Source: Diadema antillarum
Taxonomy: Eukaryota
NCBI RefSeq assembly: GCF_040938485.1
Contig: NW_027272221.1
Location: 682,001 to 746,000, forward strand
Direction of reading: 5' to 3'
Length of the DNA: 64,000 bases
Part shown: positions 34,816 through 34,983 of the stretch, in pieces
Numbering within the stretch: position 1 is the stretch's first letter
How the letters are laid out: each line of letters opens with the position of its first letter
The notes under the pieces: model-generated
The model's database searches: none
Told to the model about the DNA's origin: nothing
Seen by the model: the letters and a program-made list of their open reading frames with translations, nothing else
Translations under genes and position numbers: made by a program

Positions 34816-34983
34816 ATGTACTAGGCAGAAGACGTCGCCGTTCCACGGGTACGCCGCTTGGTCGCCGGATTACGGACTCTCCAAGTCGTCGCCGCATTGC
34901 GGAGCCTGCAAGTACTCGCCGCAACGTATTTTCCGCAAGCGTTCGCCGGTCCCGAGCATTCCCGAGTACTCGCCGAACCACAG
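34816..34983 (+). CDS. Gene D exon 2 (DVLGRRRRRSTGTPLGRRITDSPSRRRIAEPASTRRNVFSASVRRSRAFPSTRRTT)
   Basis: Acceptor ttttttctccag, donor GTAGG, 168 nt, phase 1-1; five full 27-bp units plus a partial one, each starting CGCCG. Confidence 0.85.

Follow-up and report, generated by a model that had tools for sequence, protein, structure and literature searches.

The second exon of a small gene of the sea urchin Diadema antillarum, here denoted as gene D, is a genuine and strongly conserved coding exon of a small secreted protein, in which 27-bp units place a pair of arginines at every ninth residue. Judged from the sequence, gene D appears to have amplified a single module of its gene family about five-fold by 27-bp tandem duplication, and there is roughly an even chance that its product is a convertase-processed multi-peptide precursor. 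Unless a contig or locus is named (e.g. C1333 or C89), all positions refer to the window, i.e. the whole stretch of 64,000 nucleotides that was analysed.

The repeat array in exon 2

Exon 2 of gene D spans 168 nt on the plus strand (34816..34983) and runs from phase 1 to phase 1. Its limits are exact, with the acceptor ctccag/AT (in the context ttttttctccag/AT) and the donor ACAG/gtagga, and they are the same in the RefSeq model of Diadema setosum. The open frame from 34818 reads VLGRRRRRSTGTPLGRRITDSPSRRRIAEPASTRRNVFSASVRRSRAFPSTRRTT; the other two forward frames of 34816-34983 are closed or featureless. Following an initial D-VLG-RRRRR, the exon consists of five 27-bp units and a partial sixth, all on the plus strand: unit 1, RR-STGTPLG (34836..34862), with RRR before it at 34827-34835; unit 2, RR-ITDSPSR (34863..34889); unit 3, RR-IAEPAST (34890..34916); unit 4, RR-NVFSASV (34917..34943); unit 5, RR-SRAFPST (34944..34970); and the partial unit 6, RR-TT plus the first base of a split Asp codon (34971..34983). 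The RR-delimited heptamers of units 1 to 5 had been proposed in an earlier note made from the letters alone, and they are read in this open frame exactly as listed there. The count of 17 Arg given in the same note is borne out over 55 full codons (31% of the exon), corresponding to 17 of the 110 residues of the protein (15%).

The RR pairs are located at residues 7-8, 16-17, 25-26, 34-35, 43-44 and 52-53 and thereby show an exact 9-residue (27-bp) period, six times in succession. The array as such, also claimed in the earlier note, withstands randomization: none of 5000 codon shuffles reached the observed periodicity, and six periodic RR arose in 2 of 20000 residue shuffles. Comparison of the exon DNA with itself gives an identity of 0.57 at a lag of 27 and 0.51 at a lag of 54, with ~0.25 at other lags. 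Tandem Repeats Finder reports the best two units alone (34861-34923, period 27, 2.3 copies, 80%). Units 2 and 3 form the closest pair, with 20/27 nt in common; when the RR codons are left aside, the units agree at 7-15 of 21 nt, and the array is therefore considered old and diverged. RR and an S/T/P composition are all that the units have in common. A Gly precedes the basic site at two of the six sites (DVLG-RRRRR and TPLG-RR).

An antisense ORF of 104 codons on the minus strand (34688-35002) also shows RR every 9 residues. This is a mirror effect, since the complement of the CGCCG repeat is CGGCG, and neither splice nor orthologue support was found for this ORF.

Gene structure and predicted protein

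Gene D comprises three exons on the plus strand. Exon 1 (34232..34298), located by a scan for phase-compatible first exons, carries the ATG and the signal peptide MEKILVLSLILLVVGSLFMEDT, ends on the first base of the following codon and is bounded by the donor GTAAGT at 34299. The coding part of exon 3 (35449..35546) is in phase with exon 2 and reads (D)GLDLLEANVADVMVKASAAATNLHLNSPVFN then TAA; it encodes the C-terminal helix that is conserved throughout the family. Two AATAAA motifs on the same strand (35615-35620 and 35677-35682), 70-135 nt past the stop, are candidate poly(A) signals read from the sequence. At the level of sequence comparison, the three-exon model is independently confirmed by the D. 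setosum RefSeq protein XP_072170675.1 (termed P0001 below; 110 aa, annotated as "uncharacterized"), whose three exon boundaries are the same as those of gene D.

The N-terminus starts with MEK; a stretch of 15 hydrophobic, uncharged residues follows, and small residues (VVG-S) come after it. This N-terminus was judged to be a signal peptide from this n/h/c layout and from its conservation, not by SignalP, and it is encoded by a dedicated phase-1 exon present in ~10 copies. Owing to this N-terminal signal peptide, the gene D protein is expected to enter the secretory pathway, where convertases act. A single-sequence AlphaFold2 model of P0001 shows a helix at residues 2-27 (the signal region) and a second, confidently modelled one at residues 75-104 (pLDDT about 86); the stretch in between, which corresponds to the repeat, is disordered (residues 28-74, pLDDT below 50).

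Two other starts were considered and discarded. A cytosolic start MSKLTGK at 34626 was ruled out, since its ATG is not conserved in the paralogues and a signal-peptide exon 1 was found. An ATG at the start of exon 2, present in all paralogues, opens a frame that stops after two codons in D; its conservation is due to the D-A/V codons.

A tandem family around gene D

Gene D belongs to a family that forms one ~90-kb cluster, in which the complete genes number at least 6 and the signal-peptide exons about 10. Ten copies of exon 1 are spread from C1333:629.9k to 716.2k, and relatives of exon 3 occur in the D. antillarum genome in this cluster only. Exon-1 copies match at 7984, 26831 and 234 on the minus strand, and others along the contig; all of them read MQKLVILCLVLLVVGSLFVEDT or nearly so and have GTAAG donors in phase 1.

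Paralogues B, C and P2 are encoded on the minus strand. In paralogue B, exon 1 (7918..7984) reads MQKLVILCLVLLVVGSVFVEDT, exon 2 (4222..4272) reads (D)AWRRRRRRRDSTSSPS and exon 3 (3944..4041) reads (D)HVQRFEENAAEVWMKADAEACNLKMSDHGLD plus a stop. The corresponding parts of paralogue C are MQKLVILCLVLLVVGSLFIEDT (exon 1, 26765..26831), (D)AFGTRRRRRRGFSNSQS (exon 2, 14848..14901) and (D)DTHQFEENVADVWMKADAAACDFKMSGHGFN plus a stop (exon 3, 14305..14402); this exon 1 was given to C because it is the next one upstream, which implies an intron of about 11.9 kb. B and C encode 71-residue precursors and, as the earlier note had stated, contain one unit each (RRRRRRR-DSTSSPS and RRRRRR-GFSNSQS). Exon 1 of paralogue P2 lies at 168..234, with exons 2 and 3 just outside the window at C1333:678.0k and 677.7k. 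Across the family, exons 2 and 3 are DAQRPISRRRRGLFFMRGDSTSN and GDNRERLEVKVADAEEMQHNANLNKKVIDDF in G641, DAANRYLRRRRRFAGSPSMAT and DHVEKFEANVADVWMQADDAACIFKLSDHGFN in P1, DAWRRRRRRRDSTSSPS and DHVQRFEENAAEVWMKADAEACNLKMSDHGLD in B, and DAFGTRRRRRRGFSNSQS and DDTHQFEENVADVWMKADAAACDFKMSGHGFN in C; P2 has the exon 2 DAYFASRRRRSRDSTSSPS and an exon 3 close to that of B, with TGG changed to TGA in the window haplotype, and D has an exon 2 of five and a half units and the exon 3 DGLDLLEANVADVMVKASAAATNLHLNSPVFN.

These genes follow a common plan. Exon 1 encodes the conserved signal peptide and then a short acidic peptide (S-L/V-F-x-E-D-T-D-A/V...). In every member, exon 2 is in phase 1-1, its length is divisible by 3, and it starts with D-A/V and contains at least 4 Arg in a row. 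The product of exon 3 is a conserved C-terminal helix that is mostly anionic. The Arg tract (at least 4 consecutive residues) occupies the same place in 6/6 complete genes, the next residue being D, G, S, F, G or S. Exon 2 of the paralogues is built from one R4-7 tract and one S/T/P spacer, and most paralogues have a single Cys, a possible dimer-former. The unit of B (CGC CGA GAT TCG ACG AGC TCC CCA AGT) shows visible kinship with unit 2 of D (compared as CGC CGG ATT ACG GAC TCT CCA AGT), so that D seems to have amplified the family's module of a basic site and an S/T/P spacer. The internal repeat expansion put forward in the earlier note is corroborated by this distribution, with the 27-bp module single-copy in the paralogues and amplified in the coding exon of D.

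Between paralogues, conservation peaks in exon 1 (84-96% within the non-D genes), with identities of 15-80% in the flanks and 22-81% in exon 2. In exon 3, pN/pS between paralogues ranges from 0.5 to 1.1. D and C exhibit six synonymous differences at conserved residues of exon 3, which confirms the reading frame, and paralogue pS exceeds pN.

The assembly keeps both haplotypes of the region as separate contigs with 97-100% identity, partly inverted, and genome-wide copy counts of the family are therefore roughly doubled; the right part of the cluster recurs in inverted orientation on contig C89, and its left part recurs on C8. Exon 3 of P2 carries the TGG to TGA change inside the conserved helix on one haplotype (L010, C1333:677696-677788, just left of the window) and is intact on the other (L005, C89:369425-369514), making the change a segregating null allele.

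Some family copies are degenerate or orphan exon-1 copies. Left of the window, those at C1333:632628, 656824 and 660988 (L030, L020 and L023) have no recognisable exon 2 or 3 downstream, and the one at 632628 is frameshifted. The copy at C1333:629938 is accompanied by an exon 2 (DAFMNRRRRHIGLHAASK), and exon 3 was not detected there. A low-stringency tblastn search for exon 3 of the upstream paralogues gave noise apart from the G641 exon. A cluster with pseudogenes, orphan exons and a pN/pS of 0.5-1.1 suggests a mode of evolution that would befit immune, toxin or reproductive effectors more than neuropeptide genes.

Conservation between Diadema species

Between D. antillarum and D. setosum, 10 of 333 coding nucleotides of gene D differ, yielding 5 synonymous and 5 non-synonymous changes. 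Exon 2 shows 3 differences in 168 nt, of which one, in unit 5, alters an amino acid (A to G). In the aligned non-coding DNA (introns, 5' flank and 3' UTR), 17.2% of sites differ; compared with this background, Fisher's exact test yields a p value of about 1e-9 for exon 2 and, for the complete coding sequence, of about 1e-13. Divergence in the exons is 5-10 times lower than in the introns, and splice sites, phase and ORF are conserved. The whole of exon 2 thus appears to be under strong purifying selection; as a single non-synonymous change stands against 17.2% non-coding divergence, the spacer residues are constrained and not RR alone.

The RR spacing in an orthologue had been set beforehand in the earlier note as the point at which its claim could fail, and a comparison of unit number across species had been proposed. 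D. setosum keeps every RR; all six pairs, their spacing and the unit number are identical to those of D. antillarum. The array accordingly predates the split of the two species and has been frozen since. Within D. antillarum, the two haplotypes differ in 69 alignment columns over 3.1 kb, with 0 in any exon. Synonymous sites of exon 2 show 2 changes in ~40 sites between the species, compared with 17% in the neighbouring non-coding DNA; these small numbers hint at an extra constraint, e.g. by splicing signals or CpG-rich Arg codons.

Relatives in databases

A profile of six exon-3 peptides was searched against 1.84 billion representative proteins and yielded one true match, P0001; the four other matches were dismissed as unrelated repeat proteins. 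Word searches with P0001, either whole or restricted to residues 1-40, returned P0001 itself alone. The gene D protein has no usable match in Pfam, NCBIfam or PDB, and the ESM Atlas gave sub-threshold, unrelated rows only. Homology to a named neuropeptide family was found neither among the 1.84 billion representatives nor in Pfam, NCBIfam or PDB. The family thus seems to be an orphan, so far seen in Diadema only, its absence elsewhere resting on protein databases that cover few diadematoids. No protein is present in the databases for B, C, P1, G641 or D. antillarum D, though RefSeq proteins of D. antillarum are included there, and the family genes of this species appear to be unannotated. The search for literature on Diadema venom or spine peptides gave nothing usable, and neither did one for a published rule on the residues that flank dibasic cleavage sites.

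Putative processing and function

The reading favoured here, a multi-peptide precursor processed by convertases, would encompass several successive steps. The signal peptide would be lost as the protein enters the ER. A furin/PC-type convertase would cut the poly-Arg tract common to the family (RRRRR in D), PC1/3- or PC2-type enzymes would cut the additional RR pairs of D, and a carboxypeptidase would then trim the basic residues. This would be expected to yield an acidic N-terminal peptide with a terminal Gly (SLFMEDTDVL-amide if amidated), the repeat peptides STGTPL-amide, ITDSPS, IAEPAST, NVFSASV and SRAFPST, and, as the last one, a 34-residue C-terminal helical peptide. We infer all of these proteolytic steps, the amidation and any bioactivity of the products. 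The motif of furin-type enzymes is R-X-K/R-R, which a run of at least 4 Arg fits. As the tract is common to all paralogues and is part of a secretory protein, a pro-protein cut at the Arg tract is the most economical reading; the extra RR pairs in D, two with a Gly before them, would make D a multi-peptide precursor.

Candidate precursors of echinoderm neuropeptides are recognised by a signal peptide, flanking basic sites and, optionally, a C-terminal Gly (PMC4772807). Gene D fits these operational criteria (PMC4772807): a signal peptide is present, the candidate peptides are flanked by RRRRR and five RR(R), conserved in D. setosum, and a C-terminal Gly occurs at 2/6 sites. The disorder of the repeat in the AlphaFold2 model would be expected of a protease-accessible linker. 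A further criterion, that repeated copies encode similar peptides, is where the fit fails, STGTPLG, ITDSPS(R), IAEPAST, NVFSASV and SRAFPST being dissimilar. This dissimilarity counts against full processing, since multi-copy neuropeptide precursors usually keep their copies alike. The residues following three of the five secondary RR pairs are Ile, Ile and Thr. Beta-branched residues after cleaved dibasic sites are reportedly disfavoured, as Rholam et al. are said to have found in 1995, and these three positions likewise count against full processing, as do Arg runs of up to seven, which are longer than a cleavage site needs. The effector-like evolution of the family counts against a neuropeptide reading of gene D. 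The precursor interpretation offered in the earlier note therefore stands in part: the coding exon, the signal peptide, the basic sites and the Gly speak for it, and the dissimilar heptamers and the effector-like family against it.

The main competitor, possible but clearly less probable than processing into peptides, is that the Arg stretch remains uncut, or is cut at the first RRRRR alone, and acts by its charge as a secreted, disordered polycationic domain. It would bind microbial surfaces, sulfated glycans, other polyanions or the anionic helices of the paralogues and might serve as a host-defence, adhesive or reproductive effector, the R5-7 tracts of B and C being masked by their anionic flanks. 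The charge bookkeeping agrees with this: N-terminal peptide, Arg part and C-terminal part carry -3/+7/-6 in B, -3/+6/-5 in C and -3/+15/-3 in D, so that B and C are near neutral overall and D would be strongly cationic if uncut (+15 over the 50 residues of its Arg stretch, +9 for the mature protein). A charge-based function would also accommodate units that share RR and S/T/P composition alone, Arg runs of up to 7 that exceed the cleavage motif, and Ile, Ile and Thr after three RR pairs, along with a pattern known from effector families, i.e. a best-conserved signal exon, mature parts with a pN/pS of 0.5-1.1, a tandem cluster and a segregating pseudogene. However, the Arg run matches R-X-K/R-R, and the uncut state would thus need protection, e.g. 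by O-glycosylation. If charge alone mattered, the spacers should drift, but there is 1 non-synonymous change in 55 codons versus 17% neutral divergence, a constraint that argues somewhat against a pure charge function. The combination of signal peptide, cationic segment and anionic pro-segment known from antimicrobial precursors is found in D and B. The spacer is nearly devoid of hydrophobic or amphipathic character, in contrast to known cationic antimicrobial peptides, and the mean hydrophobicity of the cationic segment (-0.7) together with its modelled disorder argues against a classic membrane-active peptide. A bolder proposal, which we regard as improbable, holds that the Arg tracts are the active element and not cleavage sites, and that Diadema secretes 'masked polyarginine' proteins, with R5-R7 between anionic peptides in B and C and six RR pairs at a 9-residue pitch in D; such a module would bind or penetrate cell surfaces, sulfated glycans or microbes and would be tuned, or else unmasked, by the anionic N-peptide and the C-helix.

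Readings that place the protein outside the secretory pathway, or deny it altogether, fare far worse. The earlier note had considered an uncut protamine-like domain, and a nuclear role in DNA packaging, by a protamine-like or SPKK-like domain of the kind found in the tails of sperm histones of sea urchins, would account for the richness in Arg, Ser, Thr and Pro and for motifs such as SPSRRR and PSTRR. In the nuclear sense this is contradicted by the conserved hydrophobic signal peptide from a dedicated exon; moreover, Arg accounts for no more than 31% of the residues of the exon and 15% of those of the protein, the C-terminal region is anionic, and no histone or protamine Pfam match was obtained, which renders such a role highly improbable. 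Scarcely more credible is an intracellular substrate or pseudosubstrate of a basophilic kinase recognising RRxS/T sites. RRRS, RRIT and RRTT do fit R-R-x-S/T, and RRIA and RRNV are pseudosubstrate-like, but the cytosolic start MSKLTGK (34626) that such a protein would use is not conserved in the paralogues, and exon 1 encodes a signal peptide, as confirmed by the RefSeq orthologue. The chance is equally slight that the stretch is no functional coding element at all, i.e. a chance ORF, the antisense ORF (34688-35002, minus strand) or a pseudogene. CGCCG repeats give RR on the opposite strand too, and the paralogue P2 has a stop codon in the window haplotype; set against this, splice sites, phase and ORF of gene D are kept in D. 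setosum, with exons 5-10 times less diverged than introns, and the minus-strand ORF is without such support.

Comparison with known systems

With the multi-copy neuropeptide precursors of echinoderms and other bilaterians, e.g. those of the SALMFamide and TRH types, gene D shares the signal peptide, the di- or tribasic bounds, Gly as an amidation signal and internal duplication. It differs from them in having no sequence kinship, in the dissimilarity of its copies and in the use of RR or poly-R where KR is usual. Neuropeptide genes are usually single-copy and widely conserved, whereas gene D belongs to a fast-evolving, Diadema-restricted tandem family. Speract-type precursors resemble it as secreted sea-urchin precursors with short peptides at a fixed period and basic separators. 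The speract precursor is said to consist of near-identical Gly-rich decapeptides separated by single Lys, reportedly described by Ramarao et al. in 1990; it lacks both poly-Arg and a conserved C-terminal helix and is not similar to gene D in sequence.

Tandem units of a basic site and a short peptide are also known from Kex2/furin-processed repeat proteins, i.e. yeast alpha-factor, fungal KEPs and the honeybee apidaecin precursor, in which near-identical peptides are the product. Internal duplication and processing in the secretory pathway, the latter predicted in D, are further features in common; the units of gene D, in contrast, share RR and composition only. Protamines and the SPKK/SPRR motifs of sperm histones are similarly rich in Arg, Ser and Pro, with basic doublets after S/T-P, but these proteins are nuclear and lack a signal peptide, whereas gene D has one and a far lower Arg content. 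Mussel myticalins are cationic host-defence peptide precursors with an anionic pro-piece. The same applies to the centrocins of sea urchins (PMC4805251). Both resemble the gene D family in their conserved signal, variable mature part, multigene organisation and combination of cationic and anionic segments. They differ in that the cationic part of the gene D family is a bare Arg run or a hydrophilic, disordered S/T/P stretch and that its conserved part is the anionic helix, and there is no sequence similarity.

Genomic neighbourhood and significance

Gene D is closely followed downstream by two intronless paralogues that encode rhodopsin-type GPCRs (Pfam 7tm_1) on the minus strand (39152-40252 and 50985-52316; L042:19623-20636). 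The RefSeq annotations of Diadema call them 'nociceptin receptor-like'. As D. setosum has the same GPCR neighbour, a peptide-type receptor adjoins the secreted-peptide cluster in both species. In a weaker variant of the bolder proposal mentioned above, the released peptides would be ligands of these adjacent 'nociceptin receptor-like' GPCRs, forming a linked ligand-receptor cluster. Between the GPCR genes, two adjacent ORFs of 312 and 235 aa on the plus strand (48293-50022) have the look of a broken LINE-type reverse transcriptase (e.g. YRPISLL...FADD).

Diadema antillarum, a keystone grazer of Caribbean reefs, has suffered mass die-offs, and hardly anything is known about the peptides that it secretes. 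What is new here is a previously unrecognised family of small secreted poly-Arg proteins, Diadema-restricted so far, of which one member was already annotated as "uncharacterized" in D. setosum. An invariant poly-Arg tract is unusual, and one member has turned this tract into a periodic array that is conserved between species. The repeat of gene D may be regarded as a well-defined lead, not yet as a discovery. It provides a clean example of a module of cleavage site and spacer that was amplified into a multi-peptide precursor or a polycationic domain, and the locus offers concrete peptide candidates for signalling, defence or spine-venom biology.
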